Positions 10,350 through 37,119 of a stretch of 64,000 nt of DNA are shown in pieces. The notes below the pieces were generated by a model. The model was not told where the DNA came from and made no database searches. It was given only the letters and a program-made list of their open reading frames with translations. Source of the stretch: Takakia lepidozioides (taxonomy: Eukaryota > Plantae > Bryophyta); NCBI GenBank assembly GCA_030704615.1, contig CM060731.1:19282001-19346000 (forward strand), read 5' to 3'. How positions within the stretch are numbered: position 1 is the first letter of the stretch; every line of letters begins with the position of its first letter. The position numbers and the translations under genes are program-made.

Positions 10350-11042
10350 CGTTGTCGATCTGTGCGCCCACTTTTAAGAGCTGCAGGACACCGGTTGTGC
10401 TGTGAATCATGCCATGTGGAATTAGGATCTCTGGGTAGGCGCAGAACTAGTTATATAATTAAATCACATAACCTGAAGACTTTGAAGCAGATAGCATCAC
10501 CAAGCTCTAGATGAGCAGTAAATGGTACACATGTAGTTCGAAAATCCTCAGGTATTGATTCGCTTGTGTACTTAACAAAACTGACATCCTTGCACGAACT
10601 GTTTGAAAGAGATCAGATACGTACTGATCACTTTTCCATGGATTACTGAATGTCTAGCTCACCTGTCACTGACTACCAATCGTCCTCACTGTGAGAACTC
10701 AGCTCGTGAGCCTAAATCAGCTCTTTTATAACGAGTTAATTACCTATGTCCTGAAGTTTGTTTTCATTCAGTGGCTGCAGCTTCAATTGTAGGTTTGTGT
10801 AAGGCTTTGTACATGTGTGATACCTGCTATAGACCAGAGATTTTGGCACCAATGGTTGTCCCTGTCGATGTTCGCGAGGATATAAACCAAGCAACCTAAA
10901 AGAGCATCAAAATGGACATAATGCAGGCCGTGGGACAGGACATAGATCAGAGGATCTCGATCCCACTTTTTGGTGCTTGCTAATTGGCATATATTTCATC
11001 GAGGTTTAGATCAACAAAGTTTGCACACTCCCACTTTAATGC

Positions 11043-11148
11043 GAGGCCTACCGATCCAGGACTACTGTTCCAAAGAGTTCCTAAATATTTTAAACGAGGC
11101 CTACCGATCAGGACTACCGTTCCAAAGAGTTCTTAAACATTTTAAAAA
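11043..11148. repeat. Two-copy ~53-bp tandem duplication
   Basis: gaggcctaccgatc(c)aggactac.gttccaaagagttc.taaa.attttaaa occurs twice. Confidence 0.85.
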
Positions 11149-11591
11149 GGGTTTGCACTACAATGTCCTGATATCCTGACTGGTAATCACGTGAGCGTAA
11201 GAGAATCCTCCTGAGCTCTCCGGAGCGAATCGTTACACAATCTGCTGGGGATTCGACCTCTCTACTTTCTGAGCAATCTCAGACTGCTCACATGTGATCT
11301 AGAATACGTGAATTGAATACATTCACGAGGATTGAAGGATCGCCTGCCCTGCCCTACGATTCCCACATATTCGTCAGGAGAAACGTTGACGATGCGACAC
11401 ACTTGTAAAACCAGCTCCGTAGCCGAGTGTATATACGTACATTATACGCATGTATGTATGGGAAACACCGTACGTGGCTGGGCCAAAGTACTAGATACGG
11501 CTAATTTTAACTAATTGAATAAAAAGAAAACAAATACCCAACGGGTATATCCGAATATAAATTTGCCTGGATCCTCATGAAGGGTATATAC

Positions 11592-14777: not shown

Positions 14778-14980
14778 TAAGGGAAACACCTGGGAGCGAC
14801 AGCTCATAAATCAGGCCCCTTTGTAGTGAGAGGAGAAAATAACCTCTTTCATTTATGCGGCATGGAAGCGAATGAGTGGGACACCGCCCATGAACCATAC
14901 CACACCCGTCAGTAGCAAGATTTGACCCCAGAATCATTTGGGTGGCACTCAGTGCACTTAACCAACTGAGCTACTGACTG
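14778..14980 (-). mobile_element. tRNA-derived SINE, copy 1
   Basis: Minus-strand head GTCAGTAGCTCAGTTGG (A box)...TGCCAC...GGGTCAAATC (B-like box)...GCTACTGAC; body shared with 19725, 32523 and 33092. Confidence 0.8.
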
Positions 14981-15619
14981 TTATTTATAGTGAGATACAA
15001 TTTACAACTAGGGCTTCGCGTTGCTCCGCTCTACTAGCGACAAATTCTAAGAACTATGTTCAATTTTTCACAAAAAAAAGGGGTGGGTCATCCCCACGAT
15101 GTTACATGCAGAGATCCCATGTTTTTTTTTTCCTGGAAGAAAAATGGCGGATCTGCATTTCAATGTTCAATTTTCACAAGCCGCATCAATCAATAACAAC
15201 ATACCCAAATACCCTTACATTCACTGTATGAACTTTCAAGCCCAAGAAGTGAGGGGGAGTTGAACCCCCTTTTCTACCCGGTATGCAAACACCTCCCCCT
15301 CCCGCCCCCCTCGCCCTCCCCCTCGCCCTCCCCTTCTCTCCGTCCGTCCATCCGTCCCTCCCTCCCCAAGTCCCTCCCCAAGCATCAGACATCACATCAA
15401 ATAACCACCCCCATGTAGCTGCACTGATCACCCTCCCGAAATAAGGAAAGAAAAAAAAACATCCAGAAAAATTGAGAAACCCAAGCCCTCCATAACATCC
15501 CGACACTGAGCCTCGAAGGAAACAACAAATACCGACGCACACACCTATGGCACTCCCAACATTGGGCTAGATCCCACGCAATAGCAAACCAGCACCACTC
15601 ACACTACACCATTTTAAAT

Positions 15620-17475
15620 TTAATGTTGTGTTGGAAATGGCTCAATTCTTCGATTGTTTATGCAATCTCTCAAGTGGGTTTTTATGGCGGATGTTGCGTA
15701 TCGGGAATGTGCGGGATTTAATCCGAATGCTATATCTGTGGCATAAACTATTGCAAATATGCCACAGGATGAATTGTCAGTCTGTTGCATGACATCGGCA
15801 TAGATATAATTGAATTGTGGGACTGGGATTAATTTCGCGAGATGTTGTTCTATTTCGCTCGGTAGCCACTTATCCGCAGGCATGCTGGAGTCAAACACCG
15901 TACATTGACAATTTGTTTCGTTTGGATTTATCATTGTTAGAATCCAATGGTTGTTGTTGACGAACACGTGCTGCAAACACTTCTTGGTGTATTTCATTCT
16001 GCCTAGTAGAGTCGAATACGCATGTTGCTGGTAGTTTTGTGTTTCCAGTTCCTGATCAAATAGCATTTGCATCCCGGCCGCCAAATGTTGGTCACACAAC
16101 CATCCATTGTCATCCAAGATGATTTGTTCGTCGTACGCTGTCAATAGGAGATCTTCGTGCCAATATGTTTCTTGGCGGAAATCTGTGTCGGATTGTTCGT
16201 CTTCGGAATCGATTTCTATAATTTCGAGCGGTGTGGGAGCTAATTCTGAGCAAGTTTGGTTTTCATTTGATTCTATCGGTGTGGGATGTTCGGCTTCAGA
16301 ATTGGTTGGCATTTTTAATTCTCCAAACGTGTGTCTTGGTTGGAGCGTTTTGGTGGCAAGGTTTGTATTCACCGTGCTGATGTGTTCCGTGGACTTGTGT
16401 GATTTTTGTTTTTGGACATTACAATCGGCTTGTGGAGCCATGAACTCTAGTGAGCCTGTCTTGAATTTGGCTCCTTGGATGTCTTCGAACTTAATGTCCC
16501 GAAGTATTACTAGTCCTTGTAGGGAACGCAAACGAGACAGTGTGACGTAAATGTTGTGCATGTTCAAGGGGTGTCCATCTGGTGGTTTTTGCAAGTCGAT
16601 GATTATCCTGTCGAAAGTTTTGTCTTGGCCTTTGTAGTCGGTTAGACAATATGCGGGTATCAGAGGCAATTGATGTCTGCTGATTTTGAATTTCTTTGGT
16701 TTTTTCAGTTCATCCTCCGTGTGGTGATAATCGAACGATCTTGAAACGGGTGTGATGGGCACTACGTTTTCTGGGAGATCTTCTAAATTTATGCTGCTCA
16801 ATGTTTGGTGTTGACTGATGAATTCCCCGAAGTCGATTAATACGTGATTTGGCGGGTGCATTAAATTATCTTCATGTATGATCCAATCATTTTCTGTAGT
16901 CGAGATCCCCACTATTTGTCCGACTGCACCGTTTACAAGCCCCAATCTAGGATACAAATTGTCGGTTAGCATGACTGTCATTCCTTTGTACAATCTAAAA
17001 AATGGAATAAGGTTGTGGCTTCTATTCCCGGGTACGGTCTGTCGGATTGCGAATTGGAATTTGTTGCGGAGTGCGTGTTTTTTGTAGGTGTTTGTTCCTG
17101 TGGTGTAGGACGCGTGGTTAGATTTACGTGTGTAGTATTCTATCATTTGGTGATTGATGGCGTTCTTTAACTGGTTTCGAGGTACAATGTACGTTGCTTT
17201 ATCCCATGGTTCGTTGAAGAGGTTGATTTTCAGTTTCGACATGAATCTTGTTTGTAATAGTTCGAAGTCCGTTTGGGTGAAGTTGTCTTCACGTAGATTC
17301 TGTAGCAATTTCGCATATTGTAGATCGTGGGCTTGTCTCATTTGCTGGGTCAAAATGATTGTGTTAGGCCGTATGTAATTTTCCCATAGGCTCTTGCCTA
17401 TCATCTTTTTTTGTGTGTATTTTGTGAATGTGAATATGGGTTGTATGTTCGTTAAATATAGAGGCGCGTCAGTGG
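15620..17475 (-). CDS. 5'-truncated RepHel-type ORF: C-terminal half of PIF1 helicase fused to Ulp1/C48 cysteine protease
   Basis: QQMRQ, VMLTDNL..RLGLVNG, RHQLPLIPAYCLTDYKGQ, IYVTLSR (PIF1 motifs); GWLCDQH, NNNHW, VFDS, QQTDNSSCGIFA (C48 H-D-Q-C). The frame continues upstream of the Met to ~17475 (TDAPLY) and is then replaced by PPR DNA. Confidence 0.9.
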
Positions 17476-17489
17476 CTCCCTTCGTTTAG

Positions 17490-17945
17490 CATTTGGAATT
17501 GTACCAAATGTCATTCTGGACACTGCCCTGGTGGACATGTATGTGAAATGTGGGTGCATTGAGGATGTAAAGGGAGTGTTCGACAATATGGCTGAATGAC
17601 ATGTGGTGTCGTGGAATGCAATGATCGCAGGATATGCTTAGCATGTTTTGATTCCGTGAGTCAAAATCATGGCCTCACTCCTACAATGGAGCATTTTGAC
17701 TGCATGGTGGATTTTCTTGGCTGCGCAGGTCGAGTGGAGGTGGCAAAGGACTTCATGAACAAAATGCCAATTGAACCAGCTGCTTCAGTGTGGCAGACCT
17801 TGCCTGGTGCTTGCAGAATTCATGGCAATGTGGAGGTGGCAGAAAGTGCAGAAAAATGCCTTTCTAAATGGGATCCACAGGATGCTGCTTATGTGTTACT
17901 ATCAAGCCTGACAGGCGGGACGATACTGCCAAGATTAGAAAAATG
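17490..17945 (+). pseudogene. Captured PLS/E-class PPR fragment
   Basis: TALVDMY.KCG, SWNAMIAGYA, PTMEHFDCMVDFLG.AG, MPIEP.ASVW; stops and deletions present. Confidence 0.9.
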
Positions 17946-17952
17946 TGGGAAC

Positions 17953-18018
17953 AAAGTTACCACCCTGGCTTTGGTGGGGGAAACTCTTTACATTGGCTCC
18001 CAAGATAGAAAAATTCGG
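17953..18018 (+). pseudogene. Captured WD40-repeat exon fragment
   Basis: KVTTLALVGETLYIGSQDRKIR followed by a GT donor. Confidence 0.6.
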
Positions 18019-19404
18019 GTATGCTCTCTGTTCATTTCTATCGCAAATGAGATAGATTATCATGGTAATGTTGAGAATGAGAAGATGTAGTCATTTTCTG
18101 TTGCTATGAATGTTGGTATTAGCTATCCTTGTGATTGTTGGGTATTATGTGCCCTTGGGTATGGTGGATTCAGCGTGGTTTCGAATGCGAAAGAGCGTTT
18201 CCTGCACCTTTCTCGGGGCTGATGGAGAAAGATAAAAAAAATGCATTGTTGAGTGCATAGATTCATAAATAAATTGCTACGGACTAAGTTGTGACTTGTT
18301 TGCACAGGCCTGGGCTCTGACAACGATCAAGCCCTAATGTATTTTCTTAAGCATGTTCTATGATCACATGCCTAATACTAGACACCCTAAGATACCAATT
18401 GTAGGGATGTTATCCCCCTGCTCACAAACACTGGGTAATTTCCGATTGGGTGTTGATCCAGTGTTATCTTGCACTCAAAAGCCTTCATCAATTTACTGTG
18501 ACAGGAAATAAATGTAGTGACAAGTGCGATAATGACAATACAGGGAAGGTTAAAGTTGATGCAATAGAAGAAGCCTATACTATCCAAGTATACCAGGACT
18601 TGTTGTTCACAGCTGGGGCCTTTGTCGAGGGTGGCAGCGCTAAGGTTACTTAAGCTTTCAAACCTTTGACATTAAAACACCAAAAAAATCTGATTAAGGA
18701 AGGATAATTTGTATAGATGAATATTGTTTGTTCTTAAGCTTAAGTTATGGTGAGTTATGTTGTGTTCAATTGAGTTTCAGAAATGCTTGTAACAATGTAT
18801 TGAGCTCTACAAAGATATTTGCATGTGTCTAATATGACTATGTGCAATACAAGTCTGGCCATTAAAGAATTCAAAAAATGCAAAAACTAACGAGAGTGGT
18901 CAGGACCATCAGGGAATACCTCTCCAAGTTAATTCTTACAATGTCTGTGTGTATACGCAAGCAATGACAATAGATTCTTGATGGTCCTTCAACGTCTGTA
19001 CAAGACGAAACGAAAATTGTTAGCAAGTACAAGTGCTAAGGACTACTAACAATAAAACTATTTCAACAAACACATCGTGTCACGATAAAGAGAAACCTTC
19101 CTATAGGTTCAAAGCTTCCATCTTTGCTTTGTGGCCAAGCACAGGGAAGTATTGGGAAGGGAGCTACTGGAAATTAGGCAAGAAAGGTGTGTCTGTCTGT
19201 CTCTAGAAAAACAATTGAACCATGTACAGTATAACCTGTCTAGATCTCAATTGAGACTACATAATTCTTTTCACTGTCATTCCTATGTTTACTAAGGCTC
19301 TTATGTGCTATTCTCATTCCTCCTCTGTCATTACAGTATTGTTGTAACCTGGAGAGCTATTCACACCTGATCCTCCCAAACAGAATTATAGTAGGTACAC
19401 AACG

Positions 19405-19695
19405 TATTTCTCTCCTTCTCTCCTGTTCCGCTCAAACAAAGGTATGGCAAGCAAACAACGTCTCTCTTTCCTTCTTTCCTGTTCCTCTCAAATAAGGCTT
19501 TGCTTGTAATGTCTCTCTCTCTCCTTCTCTCCTGTTCCGCTCAAACAAGGGTATGGCAAGCAAACAACGTCTATCTTTCCTTCTTTCCTGTTCCTCTCAA
19601 ACAAGGCTTTGCTTGTAATGTCTCTCTGATCTCCTTCTCTCCTGTTCCGCTCAAACAAGGCTTTCCTTGCAATGTGTCTCTCTCCTTCTCTCCAG
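19405..19695 (+). repeat. ~110-bp tandem repeat (~2.5 copies) related to the 3' terminal repeat of the LINE at 45365-45530
   Basis: Shares gttccgctcaaac and aagg(c)tatggcaa..acaacgtct with the LINE tail. Confidence 0.7.
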
Positions 19696-19724
19696 CAGTT
19701 CAAGAAGTTCAAGAAAATCAAGAA

Positions 19725-19855
19725 CACTGAGTGCCATTTGATGGTTCTGGGGTCAAATCTTGCTATTTAGATGCCTTTGTGGTGAGGTTGATGTGGAAGA
19801 GGTTATTTTCTCTTATCACTACTTGATTTATGAGCTGTCGCTCTCAGGTGGTTTT
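19725..19855 (+). mobile_element. tRNA-derived SINE, partial copy 2 inside element A
   Basis: cactgagtgcca...ttctggggtcaaatcttgcta...gaggttattttctc...gatttatgagctgtcgctctcaggtg matches the reverse complement of copy 1. Confidence 0.8.
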
Positions 19856-20569
19856 AAGAACTGTCATCAAGCTTTGTCGTAGGTTGGTCGAATTGTAGGG
19901 ATGAAGATAATAAAAGCCTAAACCACCAACTTCCGGGGGCGATTCGGAGGTAAGACCACTATTTTACACCTGGATACCTTGCAACAGCCTGTAAATCCAT
20001 AGTTTACTTTTGCGTTACCTATTGCTTTTTGGTGTTGTTGAGGCTATTCATTGATGTGACTATGTCCACCTCCTCTCCTCTCTAATTCATCTGACCCCGT
20101 AAATGCAAAAGCAAACATATAATACTACAGTCCCACTGACACCTAAACAGACCCGACCAGACACACAGCCATACCAGATAAGTGCTAGCATCAATCACAT
20201 GCCTCAACAATGCTGCCCACACAACTGCCTTGAGTACATACAACTTTCTAGAGCATGTTGATCTTAAGAATTGTTCAAAATAATGTCGGAAGTCCAAACT
20301 TGGTCTAACTTTGTCAACCTCACCCTCATAAACTGGATGATGTACAAGAAGACCTTATATACAATGAAGATGCAGGGATGGACAACATGTCGTTTTGAAA
20401 GAGGGCATTCCCTAATGAAACCAACGTGGGTCCAAACAATGTTGTCCAATTTGTGTTGAATTGTTAACTACACCACAAGCTGAATAATGAGAGATGACTT
20501 CATGACCTCAGAATGAACAGACACCATTGCTATTGTCAAAGAAATCAGTTCCCCTATGAAACTTCCACA

Positions 20570-20690
20570 GGTCCAAAGAAGCTCTCAAGGGCTCACAAAA
20601 TTTGGTGAGGTCTAGCTCCTCAACAACTTTGAGCACATCCTCAGCATCGATGGTTGTCGCTTTGATGCAACCAATGTGCATGACAAATCT
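20570..20690 (-). pseudogene. Captured histone-fold fragment (DNA pol epsilon subunit DPB4 / NF-YB-like)
   Basis: SKRQ/TIDAEDVLKVVEELDLTKFCEPLRASLD with a 1-nt frameshift. Confidence 0.75.
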
Positions 20691-20950
20691 GTCTGCATAA
20701 TATTTGTGCAATCTCCATTCCTGACGCCTATTACTAAGCCCATCAAGAATCTTAGCACTACATCTGCAACTAGTGCAACCACAAAGAATTTATCGATGAC
20801 ACCTCACAAACATTCTGAGACCTAGAGTACCATGGTTTAAATGTGCGAGTCTGTCTTGATCTTACATGCCTCAATGAGATTAAACCCTAGCATGTAACCT
20901 AGCCCAATTGTACCAATGACAACGAACAACAGCCATGGCCTTCAATGCAT

Positions 20951-21245
20951 ACTTATCTTGCATAGCCTTGGAGGCCCGGAGTTTATCTCTTCGCACCAGA
21001 AGATGGACATGGCGAGCATATTTTGTAAGATAGATTGTTTCCTCCGTTGCAGTATCACCCCCTCCCACCACTACGAGTTCTTGCCCTTTGTAAATAGGGG
21101 ATGCTCCATCACAGATAGCACACGCACTGATGCCCCTACTCCAAAATTCATGCAACCACGTATACAAGCTCAGATGCATACGTACCTCACGTTCACTAGT
21201 TCTGACTGTGAAGGGTCGATTCTTAACATCATCTACCCATGCAAG
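20951..21245 (-). pseudogene. NTRC: Captured NADPH-thioredoxin reductase (NTRC-type) fragments
   Basis: [58 protein letters not shown], plus an upstream piece [15 protein letters not shown]|gt. Confidence 0.9.
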
Positions 21246-21465
21246 TTTCTTGTACTTATTCTTCCACAGGGAATCATAGGTAATCTGCCGTCATATACCC
21301 ATCACAGGTCCAATCAAAACAGCAGCCCTAACAGCCACTTTTGGCAAGACCAGACATTTCAAAGACTGCCCTATATAATAAGCTTACAAATATATCACTT
21401 TTAGCAGCTCAATGAGAATCCTGTCAGCTTTGGAAGAACGCAGAAGAAAAAAGAGCGAGAATAAC

Positions 21466-21615
21466 CTCGGCAGGGGTCTGCTCAACGCGAAGGCATCTGC
21501 CATCGAAAATGAAGGCAATAGAGCTGGGATCAATTGACCGACGGTCGCAGTATGCATGCATCAGCTTTCGAAGTGTGGTTGTGGTCTTAATCCTGAAAAA
21601 AACCTCCCCGTCATC
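21466..21615 (-). pseudogene. SUMO: Captured intact 150-bp SUMO middle exon (not in ORF track)
   Basis: ag|[50 protein letters not shown]|gt, matching the plant SUMO1/2 core; first and diGly exons absent. Confidence 0.9.
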
Positions 21616-21796
21616 CTACACATTGCAGCATCTCCGGCCATCCGTTACTAGACCCATACAAATTCTCCTTCACAACACCTTCTTCTCCAACCACCCGAAA
21701 TTACCACAATTCTTGCAGCTTTCTTCACGAGAAGAATCTACTGAGAGTCCCTAGCATTTGATGTAACCAAATATATTTGTGAACCACATAAGAGGT

Positions 21797-22165
21797 GTAC
21801 TTGCGGACCCAGCCATTGTGGGGAAGTACACAGCGCATAACGATCCTGCTTGGGTTTCTTCAACGGGTCAGTCTCGTGCAATGCAGCAGCTGCCTTCATG
21901 TAAGAGCTTCCATCAAGAATCCACTCCATGATGACTGCTGCCTCCATCTGACCTGGGTGGTGCTTCAGCTTGTGAGTTAATAGATCAACAAACTCTGGCT
22001 TTCCTTGCATCACCTCGCAAAAGAGGGCTGAGAGAACCTCAGCAAGTAGGGCTAACACATTTCCACCATAACAGACCGTTGATGCCAAGCCTAACCCCAC
22101 TGCCGTCCCATTAACAAGGGTGAGGCCATCTTTTGGCTACAGCTCAAAGGGCTTCACCCCTTGGC
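21797..22165 (-). pseudogene. PAL: Captured phenylalanine ammonia-lyase fragment
   Basis: [69 protein letters not shown]. Confidence 0.93.
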
Positions 22166-22180
22166 GCATCATTTGCTCAT

Positions 22181-22258
22181 ACGCCTGTACCTCTGTTTAC
22201 CAACTTTGAAAGTCTCGAGGCTGAGCCAAACGCCCAGCCTAGTTATTGGGCAAACCAC
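22181..22258 (+). mobile_element. LINE fragment inside element A, same family as 43668-45530
   Basis: cctgtacc.ctgtttaccaactttgaaagtctcgaggctgagccaaa is nearly identical to 45144-45190. Confidence 0.85.
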
Positions 22259-23434
22259 CAGGCCTACATGCCTACAAGCAGAGAGATATCTAAGCAGGCA
22301 GAGATTGAAACACGGCCTGGCAAGACCAAGCTGACTCTCGCAAGAACCTTGTAAACATCAGGAAGAATACCAAATCATGGTACTAACAACAGGCAGAGAT
22401 TGAAACACAGCCTGGCAATAACCTGTTGTATGTGCTGCTTGTGTCTGTAGTCAGATAATGTCAGATCGATCTATGAATCTGGACCCACACTCGATCCCTG
22501 CTCCTTCAGCTATCCATGCCTGTGCTTGCAAGGTGAACGATGGCGAAAAACGCAGAGCTCCTGCACGATGGCGGAAAATGCAGAGCTCCTGCAGTTCAAG
22601 AAGATCAAGATCCGGGCATTGCGGGCAGTTCCAAAAACGTTGGCGCGGCGATTTCTATTGGGCTATTTCTCGCGGGCCGTCCGGGCAGATTCCAAAGAAA
22701 TTGACGACGACGATGACCTGGCTACGATGACGTGTCTACGATGATGTGGCGACGATGACATGGCACTATGGCACCCTATTCCTGCTCTACGCTAAACTAG
22801 CTTCCAACCTTTGGTCGTCGCTAGAATTTTAAAGAACACTAGGGCTTCGCGTTGCTCCGCACTACTAGCGACGACTTCTGAGAACTACGTTCAATTGGCA
22901 CAAAAAAGAGCGGGTCATCCCCACGCATACAATGATTATTTTGATTGGAAATATATATTATGCAAAAAAACATGAGGAACAATGCAAAGGTATAACATAG
23001 GCACACCCCTATTTATGCCCAAGAAGTGAGGGGGAGTTGAACCCCCTTTTCTGCCCGGTATGCAGACACTTCCCCCCCGTCCCCCCTCCCCTCCCTCTCC
23101 CCCTTCATCCCTCCGTCTCCCCCCCCCCCTTTCATTCCTCCATCCCTCCCCAAGCAGCAAACATCACATCACATCCCATGTATGTGGACTGATTGCCCTC
23201 CCAAAATAGGAAAAAACACCCAGAAAATGAAGAAACTACATTCTGGGCACTGTTGGGGCTAGGATGCGACTTGGGCAACCACCAGGTAAGTTTTACTGTT
23301 GCAGATGCACGATTACTGACTAGTCATGATTGTGTGAGATGAATTTAGCTCTGGTTGGTGGATGGAAGAAACAACCTATGTGGATTAGTCATGCTCATCA
23401 TATGCATTTAGAAAGTCTCGTTTCTTGGATGCAG

Positions 23435-23524
23435 ATTTTCCAGCTTTATGAAATGATTTTGGTGAGACACGAGATAATGCTGGTAGGCTATTCGTATGGG
23501 GCCAAGACAGAGTGCTACAAAGTC
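23435..23524 (+). pseudogene. Captured axonemal dynein heavy chain exon fragment (AAA2 P-loop region)
   Basis: ag|IFQLYEMILVRHEIMLVGYSYGAKTECYKV resembles the dynein consensus QLYE...VRHG.M.VG....GKT. Confidence 0.8.
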
Positions 23525-24356
23525 TATCTTTTTCTCGTCTTTGGTAAGAGGGAAGGGCCAGGATTTGGAAGGCCCTACTACTTTCCTCATGTAGTCCTAA
23601 GTGCGAGTATTAAACCAGCAGTTGTCCAGTCAGAACTGATATAATGTGCATGTAATGCTAGGCAACCAATGCAGGTTGGAAACACTAGTAGCGTTCAGAG
23701 AGAATCAGAAAATTATATTGCATAAGTATATGTCCAATCAGCTTGTTTTTAGTTTCATATACTATTTATATAATATTTTAGCAAAGAGTAACAAAGGCAG
23801 CCAAACACAGGGACCTTACATTCCATACTCTTGTTACCTCAGTCTCAAATATTCTCATAGTAACCGAGGCACTATTTGCAACTTTCTGAGATATATCATA
23901 ATTTTGTAACTTTTACAATAAAACACAAGGTATGTGAAATAAGGCAAAGGACAGAGGAGAAGTTCCTTTTGTGAGAGCGTCTAGTACACCACTTGCCTGC
24001 AGATACTTTTTGAATGTTTCCTTCTGTGATTCACTTGCCTACACACACATGTCAAGTCATCATCTGATTGGTGTGATTTATCTGGTTCGATATACATTTG
24101 TGTCCAACAACCTGTTTGTTTGTTTTTTTCTTCTTGATCTTGCCATATGAGACAATTGCATTTGTTTTCTAGTACCTCTAAAGTGTCATGACAGACATGA
24201 CAGGTTGGTTATAATTTCTTTGTGGGTACCAGGGATGTCTGCCTGTCTCAGGCAGTGGCCACATCACAAACAAATGTGAGCCCGGACTGCACCACCACAA
24301 TCTCAGCATTGACTGGTGAATTACTGGTGACAGTCTAAGTGGAATTGTAAGTGCTG

Positions 24357-25468
24357 AGAACTTCGGACTAGCTAGTTCAAGGCCCACACTTGCATCATCA
24401 AAGTTGAATTTTTATGTATCAGGATAAGCTGGATTTTTGTGTACATATTGTTGATCCACTTCCAAGAGCCGATGCAAATTGATGGTGTACAATGTATGGT
24501 GTGAAAATGGTTGGGCTGCCACATGGTAGAATATAAATAAGGTGGTTCCATGTTTGTTAACATAAAACAACACACACGCAAGATCCTTCAATCATATTGA
24601 AACAAGAAGAATTTGCACATTTCTTTTGGTGTTGGTTCTGCCCATTTTCTTTCCTATTACAAGCAAACATTCAACTGCTTGCTAAACTCAGACATAAATG
24701 TTTGAAATGCTGATTATGAACTTCAGACTACCTAGTTCAAGGCCCACATTCAAATCATCAAAAACTGAATTTTTATGTACCAGGATAAGCTGGATTTTTG
24801 TGTACCTATTGTTGATCCACTTGTTCCACTTCCAAGAGCCGATGCAAATTGATGATGTACAATGTTTGGTATAAAAATGGTTGGGCTGCCACAAGGTAGT
24901 ATGTAAACAAGGTGGTTCCATGTTTATTAACATAAAACAACACACACACAAGATCCCTCGATCATATTGAAACAAGAAGAATTTGCACGTTTCTTTTGGT
25001 GTTGGTTCTGCCCATTCTCTTTCCTATTACAAGCAAACATTCGCATAACTGCTTGCTAAACTCAGAAATAAATGTTTGAAATGTTGTTTATGAACTTCAG
25101 ACTACCTAGTTCAAGGCCCACATTCAAATCATCAAAAACTGATTTTTTATGTACCAGGATAAGCTGGATTTTTGTGTACCTATTGTTAATCCATTTGTTC
25201 AACTTCCAAGAGCCGATGCAAATTGATGATATACAATGTTTGGTGTAAAAATGGTTGGGCTGCCATAGGGTAGAATGTAAACAAGGTGGTTCCATGTTTG
25301 TTAACATAAAACAACACGCACACAAGCTCCCTCAATCATATTGAAACAAGAAGAATTTGCACGTTTCTTTTGGTGTTGGTTCTGCCCATTCTCTTTCCTA
25401 TTACAAGCAAACATTCGCATAACTGCTTGCTGAACTTAGACCTAAATGTTTGAAATGTTGTTTATGAC
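24357..25468. repeat. Three-copy ~360-375-bp tandem repeat in element B
   Basis: Units begin gaacttc(g/a)gacta.ctagttcaaggcccaca at about 24357, 24718 and 25093. Confidence 0.93.
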
Positions 25469-26468
25469 CTATGGAGCTTAAGAAGTTTTCCACTAGGAGG
25501 ATCAGAAATGCTTAGTCTTACCAGGAGAGTCAGATCGAAGAAGCAACGTCGTCAGCGATTGGGAAGCCGCCTAATTAAGCCTCACAAGGATTATCAACGT
25601 TCGTTCTACCAATGACAAAATGAGGGAAAACCACGGTTCTCGCTGAGAGCTTGCAGCTTGCAAGGTGAACGATGGCAGAAAACGCAGAGCTCCTGTGGTT
25701 TAAGAACTGCAATAACTTCAAGAACCGGGCAGACCGGGCAAGCTTTGGGAAACTTTGGCGCTTTGGGGTTTTTGGAGCGGGCAGTCCAGGCAGGGATCAA
25801 ACAAAAATATAACATACACATCTCGTGTTTCGTTGTTTCGCGCAAGAAGAATGGCAGAATGTTGCCGAAGTTGAACCAATCAAAATGCTTATGTGAACCT
25901 TGAGCCCTACGACCAATCATATTTTTGGGGAGTTTTATCAAAACATTTTTTGCCAAGTGGCAAAAAATAAGCAGTCTTGGGCCAGCAATGGCCCTTCATA
26001 ACACATGACCGAACCTATGGGTTGAGCCGATTGACTCACTAATAACAACCTACTCTTGTCACATTTGGATTCTTCATTCACTTGCATGGGCATTGACAAA
26101 GTCCAGATTAAGCATCCTCCATCACAGATCGTAAGAAATTCATAGTAAATCCAAAAAATATATTTCTTTCTCACGGTTAATAAAAATGCAAATGCCTTCA
26201 TGCCACAATCGGTAGAAATTCTGACAACAATGCTTATTTCCACGGAATTGGCATATCCACCCTATAGCAACTGCATTAAACGGAGGTATGAAGTGATTGA
26301 TTTGTATCATGAAGTAGATTGTGTTTCAGGTTTGAAGCTTAGGGAACTTTTCAGTTTGGGAATATCTTGCCAGAAATATATAGACACCAAGCTGTATTGA
26401 TTACTGAAACACTATGGCTGCTAGTGCATAGAGTATGCAATTCCGTTGCAATGTGCCAAAGCCATAAC

Positions 26469-26576
26469 CAATGTGCTATGGCTTCCCATGACCAAGATGT
26501 CAGGACACTCTCTTTGAACTTCCTCGCATATCGTACTCTTTATATCTCTTTGCTTCAACTAGTCTTCAAATTCCAC
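26469..26576 (-). pseudogene. Captured universal stress protein (USP-A like) exon, degenerate
   Basis: ag|VEFED*LKQRDIKSTICEEVQRECPDILVMGSHS resembles the USP motif W.K.GD.K..IC.EV.R..PD.LV.GS. Confidence 0.6.
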
Positions 26577-27188
26577 CTGTCATTAAAAAAAACCCACACA
26601 TGAGAAAAATACTGTGTCCAGCTCTCTTGTTCACAACATTTACGACACCTACGAGGGTTAAACTGATGCTTTCATTCAATGTACTGACACCCAGAATATC
26701 CAATCTGTAATACAAACATGATTGGTCTTTGGAGTTTCCAGTCAGTCACACCAGCTTCAGCATAGAAATGGGAGTGAACTTTTTCACTGTACTTTCATGC
26801 GCCCAAATTCGACCAAATGAGAGGAAAAAAGTTTCGGTGAAGAAGGAGCACGATGTGGATTACTAAATTCCCTAAGAGGATGCTCCAGTCATGAGGACCC
26901 GTGATCAAAGAAGCTGTGCACAGAATAATCAACTGGCCTATGTGGACCATAAACTCTATGTAAAAAAGAAGACACATGGAGTTTTGCTATCTAAAAAGAT
27001 GTCAGCATGAGCCTCACAATTGACTAGGGCATGATCTGCACTTTGCATGCTGTACAATTGGGCAAATTAACTTATGTAATCTCTTGTTCCATCCATACGA
27101 GTACGAGTACGAGAACCAAGCCTGCACTTGCCCAAAGCTCTTGTCAGAAATTTAGCCGGGGGCGGGGGGAGGAGGAAGACATGCTGGT

Positions 27189-28411
27189 CACTACAGGAAA
27201 AATGGGGGGTTTTCGCCGCCGCAGCCACGCCGCGGAGTCGTAAAACAGCCATTTTCGGGCGGGAAAAAAAACCAAATTTGCGACGTCCGGGCGTAGCAAG
27301 CCCGTCGTAAAAAAAACGTCGCAAATTTGCGACCAATGGGGGTCGCAAATATGCGAAACCGTGATTGGCGACGCCGACGCGATTTGCGACGCCCGGGCGT
27401 CGAAAAAGAAAAAAGAAAAAAGAAAAAAGAACTATTCTGCAATACAGAATTAGCACCGTCAGGGGGTCGCAAAGTGCGATGCCCGGACGTCACAATTTAA
27501 GGGGGTACATTTGAATTTAGGCGGGAAAATTTGAATTTGAAATTTGAATTTCAAAAACTTGTTGACCATTGACTCCGGTTCTGTCTAATGGCGATATGTT
27601 CATTGTTCTACATATATCATGCAACGCATATTTGAACCTAAGACCTCCACGTTATAACATTTCTAAGACACTACAAACTAACCAACACACCTACGCTATA
27701 TCTATGTATCACAAAAACAATCTAAATATATATATATATATACATATAAAGAGTTCCTTCAAGTTCCTTCTAAGGGGGTCTCTCTTGTGACGCCGGGGAG
27801 TTGCAACCTCCACAGCCTTACTGCCCAGCCCCAGCCCCAGCTCCAGCATCGTCGCCGTTGTTGTACCCCCCAACCCCAAGCAACGTCTTTGTGTGGACCT
27901 AAACTGACCACAACACCATTGCGACCCCCTGTGGCGACGCCGTTGCGACCCCTGACGTCGCAACGTTGGGCATCCCAGCGCGGGACGCCCCAGCGATGCT
28001 TTTGTGAAGTTGAGGGCCGCAAAGCCCAAGAAAAAAAAAAAAAAAAACTCCCACTGTGGTGATGCTGTTGCGACGTCTCGGCGTCGTAGAGGCGATGGGG
28101 CGCTCTTAGTGACACTTTTGCGACGCCGAGGCGTCGCAACGTCTAAATAAAATAATAATAATAATAATTATTATTATTATTATTTTGGATTTCCGACGCT
28201 GGGGCGTCGCAAGAAAAAAAATCCGTCGCAGCGAGGGCCCTATTTCCCCCTTCATGCCACCTTACGACGGCTGGGCGTCGTAATGGTGTGGCAGCGGGGG
28301 ATTGCGACGCCGGAATGTCGCAAAAAAACGCCGCGGGCTCGGCGTCGCGGGTTTAGCGCCGCACGGTGGGGCGCGGCTGGCGTCGCAAACCCCCCCCCAT
28401 TTCTTGTAGTG
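27189..28411. mobile_element. Non-autonomous CACTA (En/Spm) element nested in element B
   Basis: TIRs CACTACAGGAAAAATGGGGGG / CCCCCCATTTCTTGTAGTG; 3-bp flanks GGT/GAT (one mismatch); dense (t)gcgacgcc subterminal repeats in both orientations. Confidence 0.9.
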
Positions 28412-28584
28412 GATGGAGTTGGCTCATGAAAACAAAAAGAGAAAGTCCATGTAGGGGAGATCCAAAGCCCAGGGACACAAACAAGAAAAGAGAGAGAAGT
28501 GCTTATAGTCATCAGCTGGCGCATGGAGGCTATCCATATCTTCATATCCTGCTCACAACAACTCAGTAAAAGACAAAGGGTTCC

Positions 28585-29665
28585 ATGCACCTCTTTGCTC
28601 TTTCAGCTAGAGTGTTGAAAACTCCCTTCACATCCTTCATGCACCTACATTTGGCAAACATGTCAACCAGGGCAGTGTTCAGGATAACATCTCGTACAAT
28701 TCCAGCTTTGACGATGTCACCATGGACCTCTTTCCCCTTTTCCAGAGCTTCTTTCATTGTCAGCTACTAGCAGCAAGGCAAGGATCTATGCATAATTTGT
28801 TATAGGAAACACCCAACTCAACTTATCACACTATTCTACAACAAATGTATGCACCTGGTTGTCCACCTCAATACAACAGTGAGACCTGGCTCCTTTCTGA
28901 GACCTCTGTCCCTCATCATTATTCTCACCTTGGCAGTATCGTTCCGCCTGCCAGCCTTGATAGTAATACATAAATAGCAGCATCATGTGGATCCCATTTA
29001 GAAAGACATTTTGCTGCACTTTCTGCCACCTCCACATTGCCATGAATTCTGCAAGCACGAAGCAAGGTCTGCCACACTAAAGCAGCTGGTTCGATTGATA
29101 TTTTGTTCATGAAGTCCTCTGCCACCTCCACTCGACCTGCGCGGCCAAGAAGGTCCACAATGCAGCCAAAATGCTCCATTGTAGGAGCGAGGCCATGATT
29201 TTGACTCACGGAATCAAACCATGCTGGGCATATCCTGCGATCATCGCATTCCACGACATCACATTTCATTCAGCCATATTGTCAAATACTCCCTTTGCAT
29301 CCTTCATGCACCCACATTTCGCATACATGTCCACCAGGGCAGTGTCCAGAATGATATTTGGTACAATTCCAGCTTTGACGATGCAATCATGGACCTCTTT
29401 GCCCTTTTCCAGAGCTGCCAGGCTTGCACACGCACTGCAAACACACACAAACGTGATGTAGTCGGGCCTCACCCCTTCGCACATCATTTTCTCATAGGTC
29501 TCCAAAGCCTCCGTCCCGCGCTCGTCTTGTGCATACCCTGCGTTGGGCAGTGTTCAGAATGACATCTGGTACAATTCCAGATTTGACGATGTCACCATGG
29601 ACCTCTGCCCACTTTTCCAGGGCTACCAGGCTTGCACGCGCACTGCAAATGCAAACAAACGTGCC
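28585..29665 (-). pseudogene. Captured, internally duplicated PLS/E-class PPR fragments
   Basis: GVRPDYITFVCVCSACASLAALEKGKEVH, TALVDMYAKCG, EHFGCIVDLLGRAG, IEVDNQVHTF; homologous to 17490-17945 but in opposite orientation. Confidence 0.92.
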
Positions 29666-32522
29666 TTTAGTTGACCATCTACCCATGTAGGTTTCTTGTA
29701 CCTATTGATCCACAGGGAATCATAGGTAATCTGGAGCTTGAAGTCCGGTCCCCTTGGATGAATCTGGACCCGCACTCTATCCCTGCTCCTTCAACTATCC
29801 ATGCCTCTACACAAATCATGTATACATCCTTGCCTTGCTGCTAGCAGCTGACAATGACAGCCTGCTCAACAAACTTTGGAATGGAGCTATGCCCTTCGTA
29901 AGTAGGTTAAACTTATTAGCTTATCAGGGGAGCTACATGGGCATAGGACTATAAGATAAAACCAAAACAAGGAGATGCTATGACAAAGACCACAAAAAGC
30001 ACGGGAACAGACATATTTGAATTGGGCCGATTAAGACAATGTAAATAATGTCACAATGCCTAGGTTGTCTTGATCAAGGGAGCAAGACTTGCCGTATCCT
30101 TATTCGCCCTCACAAGAGCAAGTTGCAAAGACCCCAAGCTCTCTTTGCAGATACAAATAACTTGAACCAAATGCTGTTATTGATAGGTGCAAGCATGAGC
30201 TGTTCATCCTGTGCATCTCAAGGCATAATTGCTATCTCGAAATTCTCAAGTTGTGGTGCTCAGGGAACTGACAGTGAGCAGTTGCCTGATGTTGTTCCAA
30301 GCTCACGAGATTATAGTCTCCATTTCGAACCAATCTTTTGGTAACCCAAAGCTTGAGTAGCCTATTTCAATCTAGGAGAGGAACAAGTAGTCATGCACAT
30401 TGGGTCTGGAAGCTGCAAAGACTTTTATGGAACTGCTATTGAATATTGTGGCTTCTCCTCATCTCTGTTACCTCCAACAGGCATTCACCTTTTTGCCTCG
30501 ATTGTCCCACCATTGACGGGGGTCAGAAAAGTATTCATTCCACAGTTTCTCCTTGTCTCTGTTACCTGTTTCTGGATACTTTCCTGTTGTAACACTAGCA
30601 GTATCATGTCAAAGTCACTCCAAACTATCAAAGGTTCACTCAACCAGCTAACTTGCAGAATTCAACATGAAAATTTAGGGCCGATTCTGATAAGAGGGAA
30701 AAACAGGATGAAATGTGTTGAAGAAGGTGCCTGCATTAGCAGTGCCACGTTCTATCAATTGTGCCACTGCCGCTGCTGTTTCCAATTGACTGCGGTCGGA
30801 AAAATGTTCACTCCAAAGTTTCTCCTCATCTCTGCTATCTGTTTTTGGATATTTTCCTGTTGCCACATCGGCAGTAAATTGTCAAAGTCACTCCAAACCA
30901 CCACAGATCCACCCAACAAGCTAACTTACAGAATTCAATATACATCTCAGGGCCGAGTCTGATGCAATGGCAAAACAGGCTGAAATAGGTCGAAGAAGAA
31001 GGTGCCCTCACCACATTGTCCATGACCTTGTGTCATCATCCATGCAGGATTTGGCCGACCATCACCCCAAAAAAACCTCTTGTGTGCTGCTTGTGTCTGT
31101 AGACAGGTAATGTCGGGTTGGTCTGTGAAAACCACCACGGTGCAGCTGAGCAGACAAAGATTGAAAAATGGCCTCTAAGACCAAGCTGAATCTCCCAAGA
31201 ACCTTGTAAACATCAGGAAGAATACCAAATCATGGTACTAAGAGCCCACATTTGCAGGATGGACAAACTTCTTCACATCGTACATTCAGAAAAGCGACAC
31301 CTTGCGATTGTGGTTGTCCCACCATGTGCGAGAGCTCCTGCTGTGTACTCACAATCTGTGAACGTCTCCAACGTCTCCAACGTCTCCATCTGCGAATCGC
31401 GATCGGCCTGTGAAACCCCTCCTGCGGTTCAAGAAGATCAAGACACGGGCAGGTTGGGCAGTTTCGAAAAACTGGCGTGACGAGTTCTATTCGCGTTTAT
31501 CGGGCGGGCAGTTCGGGCAGACTCGACAGAATTTGACGACGAAACGTGACGACGATGACATGGCGACGAAAATGTGGCACTATGGCACCCTATTCCTACT
31601 CTATGCTAAAACTAGCTTCCGACCTTCGGTCGTCGCTAGAATTAAAAAATAAATAAAATAGAATCACAAGACAATGGTGCCAACACCAACTTATTTGAGG
31701 CCCATTAGATCATACTGCTGAGGGTGAAGATAACACCGTTGATTTATTTTTGTTTTATTAATTAAAAAATATTACTGTTATTATCTTAAGAGGTAGTAGT
31801 ACTACTACTAGGTCACAAATCGCAAACAAACAAACAAAGTCCTCACATTTTCTTATAGAAAGATTGGAGATGCTATCTACACTATTCCAAAAACCTTATG
31901 GAACATTTCAGTACATTTTCTTATTAGGCAGCTTCTTTCCTTATTTCTCCTCTTTAAAGTGAGTTTTGATAAATGAGACAGTTTTGGTGTATTTTTGAAG
32001 TTGGATCTATAGTGTTGTTCTCTCCATATTTCCAAAATCGCTGGCGGGGCCACCTGTGAATTCTACCTAGTGCACATGTGGCGAGAATAACGAGGTGACA
32101 GAGCTAGAAAAGTGGTATATTCCAGGAAGATTAGGCTTCTGAAATTCATTTATTTGCAAAAATCTCGAATTTAACCCCCCATAATTCCTTTGTACAATAA
32201 TATATGACACCTCCCGAAGGAAGCGTAAATTATGGTATCTCTTCACCCCGAAGGGTTACTGCCTTCCGCTAGGAAGGTGAACACCTTTGTGACACCAATC
32301 GGTAGATTGAACCCACAACCACTTTGGAGGTGGTATGTGCCCATTACCACTTCGTTGTCATTCCTTTGTACAAGTTGCTGACCGAGTTTCCAGGTCGAAA
32401 TCTGGCGATTTTTTGCCAGAAAAAAAAAACACATTCTATACTACGTCACGGCGCTCATACATATTGGGACACGGCTTTAGATAGGTATTGTTTTTTTCTT
32501 TTTCTTTTTTTAAAAAAGAAAA

Positions 32523-32858
32523 TAAGGGAAACACCTGGGAGCGACAGCTCACAAATCAGGCTGAGAGGAGAAAATAATCTCTTTCTCAGTAACCGCGCCA
32601 TGGAGGCGTAGAAATAGGCCCCTTAATAGTGAGAGGAGAAAATAATCTCTTTCTCAGTAACCGCGCCATGGAGGCGTAGACATAGGCCCCTTTGAGAGGA
32701 GAAAATAATCTCTTTCACAGTAACCGCCCCATGGAGGCTTAGAAATGGGACACCGCCCATGGACGGGGGAGAAGAGTATATACCCGTCAAGTAGCAGGAT
32801 TTGACCCCAAAAGCATTTGGGTGGCACTTAGTGCACTAACCAACTGAGCTACCGACTG
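32523..32858 (-). mobile_element. tRNA-derived SINE, copy 3, with internal ~60-68-bp triplication
   Basis: Head cagtcggtagctcagttggttagtgcactaagtgccac...; gagaggagaaaataatctctttc.cagtaaccgc.ccatggaggc occurs three times. Confidence 0.85.
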
Positions 32859-33091
32859 TTGGTTACTTTTGTAATAGTGAAAGACAATGTTTTGTGTCAA
32901 CCTTCTTCAGACTTTTACAAGCGATTGGGACTAAAGACAACTGACCAGTACGGTTGCTGGATGAGAAACAGAATTATTAAAAAATGCTAATAAAAGGCAT
33001 AAACCCATTTCCTTGGAATGTAAGAGTATGGCAACTGGGAAACAAATTCTCTTAGTATTTTTTAGTTTTTTCAGTTTTGTTATTAAAATTC

Positions 33092-33305
33092 AAAGAAAAC
33101 CTGGGAGCAACTGGTCACAAATCAGGCCCTCAAGGGGGAAAAATTAACCCCCTTTCAGATAAGCCATTGGGCACCCAGGAGGGAAACATCACCCCCAGAC
33201 CAACCGGTCACGAAACAAATCATACCCACAGGACACAGTGGCAGGATTTGAGCCCTGAACCACCAGGGTGGCACACAGTGCACTTATCCAACTAAGCTAC
33301 CAGCC
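33092..33305 (-). mobile_element. tRNA-derived SINE, diverged copy 4
   Basis: ggtagcttagttggataagtgcactgtgtgccaccc...gggctcaaatcc head; cctgggagc.ac...tcacaaatcaggccc body. Confidence 0.75.
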
Positions 33306-35930: not shown

Positions 35931-37119
35931 TATGTTTGAAATTGCCAAAACTGAGTTGTTTAGTCTAAGATCAACTCGATGTGGCTTTTTGTCTCTCCCT
36001 CAAACTGTTGTAACTCCGCTTCATTAGAAGTGATAACTCTATATTTTAGGCCAAACTCCTCCGATATTCTGAGGTAGTAGATAAGCCCAGGTAAAGGGCT
36101 CTCAGGTACTGTTCTTAGTCATCCGGCCTCATGGCAGCCTTGTGGCACTCTAAGGGTTTTAATTTTTTTCCCTTCAATAATCCCAAATAAAGCTTCCAGG
36201 GCCAGACCCCTGTTCTCAAAAAAAAAAAAAACTGAGTTGGGCTTTTCGATTTCCTTGCAAGTAAATGAATGAAACTTAGTAAACATTGCTTTGTGGATCA
36301 GGTGAACTGAGTCAGTGGGTTTTGCGTCGTCCAAGATTGTGGGTTATGTTCAAAGGACAAATGGCAGCGGGGCGTGGCCAGTTCCCCGCACCTGCAAATA
36401 GGATGTTTGTAGAAAATAGTGGGAGTGAAGACAAAGGGCACAAGTAGGTAGCCAGCAACACAAGCGTTCAAAATGGTGGCGTTTTGCGTGTCGTTTGCGG
36501 GCTACAAGTCTGCAGTAAAGACATCGCTAGCCGTTAAGGCCGAGGAGGAATGCCACTTGTTAAATCGGCCAACCGCCCTAGATATTGTGTCGGTTTGTTT
36601 ATCGCTCTTCAAATCGTCTCCTGAAGTAGATCATTGCCTGATCTAGATCTATAAGTGTGAGATCTCGGTTTGAGCTCTGCGAATTCATCTTTCGAATTCG
36701 TGAACATTTGATTAAACTTGGAAACTATTGAGAGGTGGTCAGCATCTCACTAGGTCCGTCATCGTTCTTGTAATCCCAGGAAGCTGTGTTCAGAGAGGTG
36801 CAGCCAGGTGGTTATGTTCCGAGTTCATTCAGTACATGCGAATGATAACCACATTTGCCTATCAGTTCCTCTTTGTTAGCCTATCAGAATATTCAATGCA
36901 ATCTGTCTCTAGATCTATGTTATCACCTCTCAATCCATTCAAAAATTCCACTGGACTAACTTAGTACCTGGCATTTCTTGTTGAGCGATTGACAAATCCG
37001 TGTTCAAACTGAGCATCTTCCAGAACTTGGAGAATCAAAGAGTCGTGCATCACCATCTAATTTCTAAGCAACCTGTAGATCGCATGTCATTGATTTCATT
37101 TCAATCTCCTTCAGTTCAG

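Follow-up and report, generated by a model that had tools for sequence, protein, structure and literature searches.

Two adjacent non-autonomous elements with Helitron2-type ends in the moss Takakia lepidozioides

The stretch of Takakia lepidozioides DNA that we analysed (64 kb, hereafter the window) contains two Helitron-like elements, A and B. They probably belong, as distinct non-autonomous members, to a single high-copy Helitron2/HLE2 family and came to lie side by side, in the same orientation, by insertion or by being carried there. Their ends fit the published HLE2 pattern, and land plants are already known to have it; the family is thus new but of a known type, rather than a hybrid of Helitron and Helentron. 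A first-pass annotation had reported rolling-circle elements in a land plant, and this was borne out, as the short inverted repeats (ATIRs), the 5' hairpin, the CTAG end followed by T and the head-to-tail order were all found.

Results

Arrangement and content of the two elements

Both elements lie on the minus strand, head-to-tail, with the short spacer described in the first-pass annotation between them (Table 1). A and B are alike in their termini and in a few internal blocks, the remaining interiors being unrelated. The likeness begins at AATT/CTAG and ends abruptly at CCCTAG-T. The boundaries given here are based on these two copies and on tables of read contigs.

Table 1. Features of elements A and B and of the spacer (positions in the window)
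Feature	Position	Strand	Remarks
Element A, non-autonomous Helitron2/HLE2-type (probable)	15008-22824 (7,817 bp)	-	ends common to B; decayed terminal signals
A 3' terminus	15008-15029	-	22-mer identical to that of B
A 3' ATIR slot	15034-15044	-	decayed to TTTGTCGCTAG; 8/11 nt; also 26 nt from end
594-aa ORF in A	15620-17404	-	C-terminal half of PIF1-type helicase fused to Ulp1/C48 peptidase domain
PPR-like fragment in A	17494-17945	+	weak PPR hits
Tandem array in A	19409-19693		56/109-bp
Pyridine nucleotide-disulphide oxidoreductase gene fragment in A	20880-21179	-	PF00070, E 7e-9
Aromatic amino-acid lyase (PAL-type) gene fragment in A	21738-22100	-	PF00221, E 1e-18
Microsatellite in A	22710-22764		14-nt
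A 5' hairpin and ATIR	22797-22824	-	CGACC-AAA-GGTTG, weakened; -4.5 kcal/mol, z -0.3
Spacer, B 3' end to A 5' end	22825-22838 (14 bp)	.	TGTTCTTTAAAATT on element strand
Element B, non-autonomous Helitron2/HLE2-type (probable)	22839-31639 (8,801 bp)	-	ends common to A; intact terminal signals
B 3' terminus	22839-22860	-	two 7-nt GC-GNA-GC units (GCGGAGC, GCGAAGC), then CCTAG
B 3' ATIR	22865-22875	-	GTCGTCGCTAG; 26 nt from 3' end; 11/11 complement of 5' ATIR
Central tandem repeat in B	24358-25467	.	374-bp x 3
B 5' hairpin	31612-31639	-	CTAGC-GA-CGACC-GAA-GGTCG-GAA-GCTAG; -7.2 kcal/mol, z -2.3
B 5' ATIR	31629-31639	-	CTAGCGACGAC; inside B 5' hairpin

The PPR-like fragment of A adjoins the point at which its helicase is truncated, and an inverted copy of this fragment is present in B (28917-29371; 91-93% identity). 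The microsatellites and central tandem repeats are typical of non-autonomous HLE2. Similar short dispersed repeats lie on both outer flanks of the pair; they are not called tRNA-derived because ARAGORN gave no tRNA in them.

Ends of the elements

The 3' terminus is the same 22-mer in A and B (GCGGAGCAACGCGAAGCCCTAG), followed by T (two occurrences in the 64 kb, none expected), as anticipated by the first-pass annotation, which had CTAG followed by T at both minus-strand 3' ends. In both copies it is laid out as GCGGAGC-AAC-GCGAAGC-CCTAG. The 3' "hairpin" lacks the form of a conventional palindrome and has almost no stability in a standard folding model (z +0.4 and +0.9). The complement of the 5' end, which had been placed about 26 bp inside the 3' end, was found at that distance in both copies. 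In B the predicted duplex has an energy of -15.3 kcal/mol, and an 11-nt match was reached by 2 of 20,000 shuffles, as against 221 of 20,000 for the 8-nt match of A. With 8 nt left in A compared to 11 in B, the inverted repeat is decayed in A and intact in B.

The 5' terminus of both elements is a 28-mer of the form CTAGCGACGACC-RAA-GGTYG-GAAGCTAG (two matches in the 64 kb, none expected). CTAGCGACGACC opens each element and lies within a hairpin with a GAA (B) or AAA (A) loop. This hairpin, which overlaps the 5' ATIR as in the first description, is real in B and weak in A (Table 1).

Since AATT directly precedes the 5' end in both copies, the start of the element can be placed only to within 4 nt, and the ATIR begins 0-4 nt from the point where the likeness between A and B stops. 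The first-pass annotation had put the repeat at the extreme 5' end, after TT; the repeat is indeed at the 5' end, while the placement after TT is only one of several readings. The flanks of both copies (AATT before, T after) fit insertion between two Ts and equally insertion between A and T. No target-site duplication was visible at the flanks of either copy, and a candidate paralogous empty site, a short dispersed repeat by the 3' end of A, gave no alignment across the insertion point.

Copy number of the ends

In public read contigs, the first ~700 bp of A at its 5' end (22106-22824, minus strand; counterpart in B at ~31071-31639) stand out as a block of high copy number. Summed depth was about 1e5 in this block of A, compared to 1e2-1e3 beside it, and 81-95 distinct contigs per run, among those listed, covered one position of it. 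Unlike the ends, the element interiors were not high-copy. Among the read-contig pieces listed, one more genomic copy keeps ATT before CTAG. No other copies of the termini were found in viral contigs or in JGI metagenome contigs, and exact-protein look-ups with two ORFs of the window gave no match.

That the ends are so abundant bears on the idea that no transposons are involved and that A and B are units of a local segmental duplication sharing their ends by chance. The two units are adjacent and in the same orientation, and the dispersed repeats on their outer flanks are similar, as such a duplication might leave them. However, their interiors have no more than a few blocks in common, the likeness ends abruptly at the termini, and the terminal blocks occur on ~80-95 distinct contigs per run among those listed, at ~100-fold the depth of the interior. 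We regard a segmental duplication as scarcely credible.

The helicase-Ulp1 remnant and its relatives

The only transposase remnant is the 594-aa ORF of A (Table 1), which is in element orientation and ends ~600 bp from the 3' end of A. Neither the Rep domain nor the Walker half of the helicase is present, the 64-kb window contains no Rep gene, and B has no transposase remnant in it. No full-length copy with these termini was recovered.

The best full-length relatives of the helicase remnant were RepHel proteins. A Pfam scan of the 26 matches of at least 1,000 aa found DUF6570 in 15 and Helitron_like_N in 19 of them, and UCH, OTU and Herpes_teg_N once each. DUF6570, which is a marker of HLE2 according to HELIANO (PMC11417382), was present in all matches of at least 1,600 aa except one, whose sequence begins at the Rep domain. 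In a tree built with no HLE1 references, the 594-aa ORF grouped with the relatives L001 and P0001 (99% support) among branches that carry DUF6570. A complete DUF6570-Rep-Hel-C48 relative was found in L002/L003, and a RepHel-C48 protein of an aphelid aligned colinearly over residues 5-584. All contigs obtained for L002/L003 are identical where they overlap and seem to represent a single locus. L001, which is interrupted by an LTR retrotransposon, has no similar terminal motif.

A PDB search returned PIF1-type helicases only; Helraiser, an HLE1, was not among the matches, and no plant Helitron1 protein was among the relatives found. As judged from sequence, the remnant has HLE2 affinity, its nearest full-length relatives carrying DUF6570. 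In principle, the ORF might have been captured as cargo instead of being left over from a transposase of the family itself.

Classification of the ends

Helitron2 has been defined (Bao & Jurka 2013; PMC3627910) by an ATIR of 8-15 bp, with its 5' copy 0-2 bp from the end and its 3' copy, which precedes a hairpin, 20-30 bp from the 3' end, and by a 5' hairpin in which the ATIR takes part. In HINEs, the 5' ATIR lies 2-4 nt from the 5' end. [quoted passage not shown] Thus, what the first-pass annotation had called hybrid termini corresponds to the published Helitron2 definition. Its further suggestion of an intermediate or undescribed lineage does not hold either, since the layout is that of Helitron2, CTAG-3' also occurs in an HLE2 proto-Helentron, and the relatives carry DUF6570. 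Nor are such ends foreign to land plants: HELIANO (2024) found HLE2 in 13 land-plant species and in 6 of the 8 land-plant classes sampled (PMC11417382), and the examples of Helitron2 include Helitron-5_SMo, which we read as a Selaginella family (PMC3627910). Helentrons (HLE2 subgroup b) have an AP endonuclease (Exo_endo_phos) fused to RepHel; we found no endonuclease in the window or among the 26 long relatives, the C-terminal fusion being Ulp1/C48 instead.

Helitron1/HLE1 elements have 5'-TC, 3'-CTRR and a single 3' hairpin, lack TIRs and a 5' hairpin, and insert between A and T. Both A and B have CTAG-3' and may have 5'-TC, yet an ATIR and a 5' hairpin are there as well. They could still be taken for canonical plant Helitron1 elements (5'-TC...hairpin...CTAG-3') if the ATIR and the 5' hairpin were accidental and the HLE2-like helicase were captured cargo. 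A start at the T before CTAG would give 5'-TC...CTAG-3', a short hairpin-forming sequence stands a few nt before CTAG, and both elements contain host gene fragments, as plant Helitrons do. Chance would then have to account for a perfect 11-nt complement at the position predicted for Helitron2, reached by only 2 of 20,000 shuffles, and for a 5' hairpin that uses this very repeat. The HLE2-like helicase remnant, oriented with the element and near its 3' end, and the absence of plant Helitron1 proteins and of Helraiser from the respective matches also argue against Helitron1, which we consider very improbable.

The flanks also allow a proto-Helentron-like or otherwise distinct HLE2 sub-lineage, with 5'-TT, CTAG-3' and insertion between A and T. 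AA-TT before and T after both copies fit TT...CTAG inserted between A and T, and the further copy among the read contigs listed also keeps ATT before CTAG. Proto-Helentron-Pi of Phytophthora infestans, a member of the HLE2 clade, has these same ends (PMC4067079; PMC11417382) and, in its case, insertion between A and T was confirmed by an empty site. The same data, however, fit insertion between two Ts with a start at CTAG or TCTAG. Moreover, the layout of A and B is the canonical Helitron2 one: their stem-loop overlaps the ATIR, unlike that of Proto-Helentron-Pi, which is at the far 5' end, separated by ~3.6 kb from the left repeat downstream of it (PMC4067079). A proto-Helentron-like or otherwise distinct sub-lineage is improbable and, even if true, would be an already described variant within HLE2.

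Discussion

A and B are best placed in Helitron2, whose described members, e.g. Helitron-1_CRe of Chlamydomonas and Helitron-5_SMo (PMC3627910), have a likewise short ATIR (11 bp here) at the same 5' and 3' positions, the same ATIR-built 5' hairpin, a T before the element and no visible target-site duplication. [quoted passage not shown] Peptidase_C48 is among the extra domains reported in HLEs (PMC11417382).

The 5' hairpin of B has a parallel in the CAGCC-GAA-GGCTG stem-loop of FoHeli1, a Helitron2 of Fusarium oxysporum, which is of the same design as CGACC-GAA-GGTCG, with a GAA loop closed by C-G (PMC5148889). In FoHeli1/FoHeli2, an inverted copy of a ~12-bp repeat likewise lies tens of bp ahead of the 3' end, and the target (TNAT^) is T-rich; FoHeli4 copies inserted a few bp apart have been reported, like A and B. 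The Fusarium elements differ by their ATTTT end, a 3' repeat 38-51 bp from the end, their fungal hosts and the lack of any reported Ulp1 domain (PMC5148889). Among non-seed land plants, HelenSM92 of Sphagnum magellanicum resembles A and B, by its description, in its HLE2-type short TIRs and T-rich sites, and differs by a GIY-YIG domain (PMC11417382). HINE/DINE-1 elements, which are non-autonomous Helentrons, have the same subTIRs, 3' stem-loop, microsatellites, central tandem repeats and T-rich targets, and likewise a copy number far above that of the autonomous partner; they are, however, short animal elements with partners that have an AP endonuclease, whereas A and B are 8-9 kb long and laden with gene fragments (PMC4067079).

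Based on the literature on the family, a RepHel transposase whose gene lies at another genomic locus would nick one strand at the 5' end, and its helicase would peel the nicked strand off from 5' to 3'. Both this autonomous partner and its placement are inferences, as neither a Rep domain nor a full copy was recovered. It would probably be of the DUF6570-Rep-Hel-Ulp1 type, like the relatives found. The start would be marked by the 5' hairpin with the 5' ATIR and its C-GAA-G loop, and the stop by the 3' ATIR, the pair of small GC-GNA-GC hairpins and CTAG; according to a proposal by Bao & Jurka, the end point is determined when the 3' ATIR pairs with its 5' counterpart (PMC3627910). A is probably a deletion derivative in which the second half of the helicase, with the Ulp1 domain fused to it, has been kept; the rest of both elements is taken up by host gene fragments and tandem repeats. 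Mobilisation in trans, and the route by which A and B came to be adjacent, are part of this proposed scheme.

The combination of ATIR, 5' hairpin and CTAG is ordinary Helitron2 anatomy, and reading it as a Helitron/Helentron chimera, though tempting, goes too far. These elements leave the current picture unchanged and add a high-copy, gene-fragment-carrying HLE2 family to non-seed land plants. Helitron finders that rely on Helitron1 rules would miss such elements or misplace their boundaries. Useful for HLE2 biology are the C-GAA-G 5' loop in common with Fusarium, the twin GC-GNA-GC units and the Hel-Ulp1 fusion.

We also considered whether A and B stand for a distinct land-plant HLE2 sub-lineage, with a DUF6570-Rep-Hel-Ulp1 transposase and a pair of 7-nt GNA-triloop mini-hairpins plus CTAG replacing the palindrome as termination signal. 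This seems unlikely; if true, nature would have supplied an experiment on which of the terminal features are recognised by a Y2 Rep. Such a family might have the A|T target of Helitron1 and the proto-Helentron, and its DUF6570-Rep-Hel-Ulp1 fusion would also occur in aphelids and in an AT-rich eukaryote that is represented by metagenomes alone.

Two head-to-tail rolling-circle elements

The tandem pair of rolling-circle elements recognized in the first-pass annotation was confirmed, with two non-autonomous minus-strand elements, A and B, separated by 14 bp (Table). When we compared the window with itself, we found that A and B have just a few blocks in common: about 90 bp at the 3' end, about 240 bp slightly inward of this, about 245 bp at the 5' end with two shorter blocks, and a PPR-like fragment (17494-17945 in A, 28917-29371 in B) that is inverted between the two. 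The likeness sets in at AATT-CTAG and ends at CCCTAG-T. Microsatellites and longer tandem repeats are present in both elements. Part of the 5' block (22183-22258) also resembles 45142-45229.

Table. Positions of the main features (window coordinates)
Feature	Position	Length	Strand	Remark
Element A	15008-22824	7,817 bp	minus	
Element B	22839-31639	8,801 bp	minus	
Spacer	22825-22838	14 bp		3' end of B to 5' end of A
Helicase-Ulp1 ORF	15620-17404	594 aa	minus	in A; Pif1 2B domain, then Ulp1/C48 peptidase domain
Aromatic amino-acid lyase gene fragment				carried in A
Pyridine-nucleotide oxidoreductase gene fragment				carried in A
DUF3537 gene	7505-9860		plus	three exon-like ORFs
AP2-domain ORF	37000-38418		plus	
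GH81 glucanase exon	62057-63313		plus	

Terminal sequences and folds

A 3' 22-mer, GCGGAGCAACGCGAAGCCCTAG, is the same in A and B and recurs nowhere else in the window, and a 5' 28-mer, CTAGCGACGACC-RAA-GGTYG-GAAGCTAG, occurs in the window once per element. Both copies had been credited with asymmetric subterminal inverted repeats (ATIRs) and a hairpin overlapping the 5' repeat. In B, this is indeed the case: its first 11 nt, CTAGCGACGAC, are perfectly complemented at 22865-22875, the last base of the complement falling 26 nt short of the 3' terminus. A complement of 11 nt was reached in 2 of 20,000 shuffles of the element ends, and the duplex energy of the two repeats is -15.3 kcal/mol. The 5' end of B folds in the model into a two-tier hairpin (-7.2 kcal/mol, z -2.3). 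In A, the 3' complement has decayed to 8 nt, and a G-T pair together with an AAA loop makes the hairpin weaker. Two 7-nt GC-GNA-GC units sit between the 3' repeat and the terminus and have no stability under a nearest-neighbour model. The sequence d(GCGAAGC) is well known as a DNA mini-hairpin of unusual stability, which such models miss. AATT precedes and T follows each copy, so that the elements could start with C, TC, TT or ATT and could have either T|T or A|T as their target.

Copy number and origin of the pair

Contigs from public runs of the same organism were aligned to positions 21500-24500. Their summed depth was about 1e5 over 22106-22913, a block that takes in ~700 bp at the 5' end of A and ~75 bp at the 3' end of B, and 1e2-1e3 beside it; 81-95 distinct contigs overlapped at one position. 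Hence the ends, but not the interiors, are those of a high-copy family. Among the contigs listed, one matched as far as 22827 and diverged beyond, which suggests at least one solo copy also having ATT before CTAG; one began to match at 22838, which is the T following CTAG; and one crossed the whole A/B junction with 12 mismatches and 13 gap letters, a hint that another such head-to-tail junction exists elsewhere. The pair probably did not arise by read-through of one element, since the interiors of A and B differ. The sequence fits insertion of one copy at AATT^T, next to the end of the copy already present, whichever of the two came first. Neighbouring and tandem Helitrons have already been described, and a FoHeli4 copy was found 2 bp from another FoHeli4 (PMC5148889). 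A short dispersed repeat lies on both outer flanks of the pair (14813-14982, 32562-32860 and 33236-33300). It holds 63-68-bp tandem sub-repeats at 32562-32755, and ARAGORN found no tRNA in it.

The helicase-Ulp1 remnant and its relatives

The ORF in A is the sole transposase-related sequence. Alignments of full RepHel proteins to it cover only the second half of the helicase and what follows, and the Rep domain and the Walker half of the helicase are absent throughout the 64-kb window. [quoted passage not shown] This is the appearance expected of a deletion derivative of an autonomous copy.

An exhaustive profile search with the remnant yielded 3,556 relatives. Among the best 150, every match of at least 1,600 aa contained DUF6570, except one whose sequence begins at the Rep domain. 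Among the 26 matches of at least 1,000 aa in the Pfam scan, 19 contained Helitron_like_N and 15 DUF6570; UCH, OTU and Herpes_teg_N appeared once each, and AP endonuclease in none. According to HELIANO, DUF6570 is the marker separating class HLE2 from HLE1, and Peptidase_C48 is among the HLE domains (PMC11417382). In a tree built from the C-terminal half of the helicase, the ORF formed one group (SH-aLRT 99) with metagenome sequences L001 and P0001, placed among DUF6570-carrying branches; this tree contained no HLE1 reference and does not formally exclude HLE1.

Of the full-length relatives, the closest is on metagenome contigs L002 and L003 (JGI; a eukaryote with a GC content of about 30%). 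One piece of it shows 62% identity, and its coding order is DUF6570, Rep, Hel, C48. This near-complete DUF6570-Rep-Hel-Ulp1 element spans L002 1-12197 and L003 1-11743, which are identical in their overlap; its coding region is broken across several frames, and the same gene piece was present in eight samples. A 2,468-aa aphelid protein shares the Hel-C48 fusion, and its alignment is colinear across residues 5-584. The closest protein was P0001 (JGI, 406 aa), which matches at 44% identity along 396 residues, the linker past the helicase among them. It is very rich in Asn and Lys, and the nearest coding relative thus belongs to a very different, AT-rich organism. The L001 relative, a Hel-Ulp1 sequence, shares 50% protein identity with the ORF. 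On this ENA metagenome contig (406 kb, 42.5% GC), it directly follows an LTR retrotransposon of about 8.4 kb, the two being located at 132-603 and 8543-9039; 9125-11308.

Class assignment

The Helitron2 definition of Bao and Jurka comprises four features: ATIRs of 8-15 bp, a 5' ATIR 0-2 bp from the 5' end, a 3' ATIR 20-30 bp from the 3' end and upstream of a hairpin, and a 5' hairpin using the ATIR; the authors add that T is preferred at the 5' end (PMC3627910). Element B shows every feature of this definition, its first base being uncertain and its 3' units lacking modelled stability. Canonical HLE2 elements have 12-16-nt terminal inverted repeats and a stem-loop after the right repeat (PMC11417382). 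FoHeli1 and FoHeli2 of Fusarium have a 5' stem-loop, CAGCC-GAA-GGCTG, closely like that of the window elements, a 12-bp repeat found again tens of bp inside the 3' end, and a target rich in T (PMC5148889).

From hybrid Helitron/Helentron termini, an intermediate or undescribed lineage had been proposed, which we do not uphold because both premises fail. That subterminal repeats with a 5' hairpin are foreign to land plants is contradicted by Helitron-5_SMo, in which we take SMo to mean Selaginella, and by the land-plant HLE2 of HELIANO. The former is among the examples in the Helitron2 definition (PMC3627910), and HLE2 was found in 13 land-plant species, belonging to 6 of the 8 classes sampled, a Sphagnum family being shown (PMC11417382). 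That CTAG marks Helitron1 is contradicted by the Phytophthora proto-Helentron, 5'-TT...CTAG-3', which is part of HLE2 (PMC4067079, PMC11417382). A and B are a new non-autonomous family within the known Helitron2/HLE2 group, of modest interest.

Host genes

The window contains plant AP2, DUF3537, GH81 and UFC1 genes. The best matches of the GH81 exon are only 57-64% identical; those with names are from mosses, liverworts and lycophytes, with seed plants next at lower identity. Together, the genes and this order indicate that the host was rightly called a land plant, and the matches point to a non-seed lineage as most likely. UFC1 (Ufm1-conjugating enzyme) is an uninterrupted 187-aa ORF (57588-58151, plus strand; profile positions 1-154 of 155), which may represent either an intronless gene or a retrocopy. 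A reverse-transcriptase ORF (RVT_1, 43567-44973) is followed by a phosphoglycerate mutase fragment (iPGM_N, 45594-46178), both on the plus strand.
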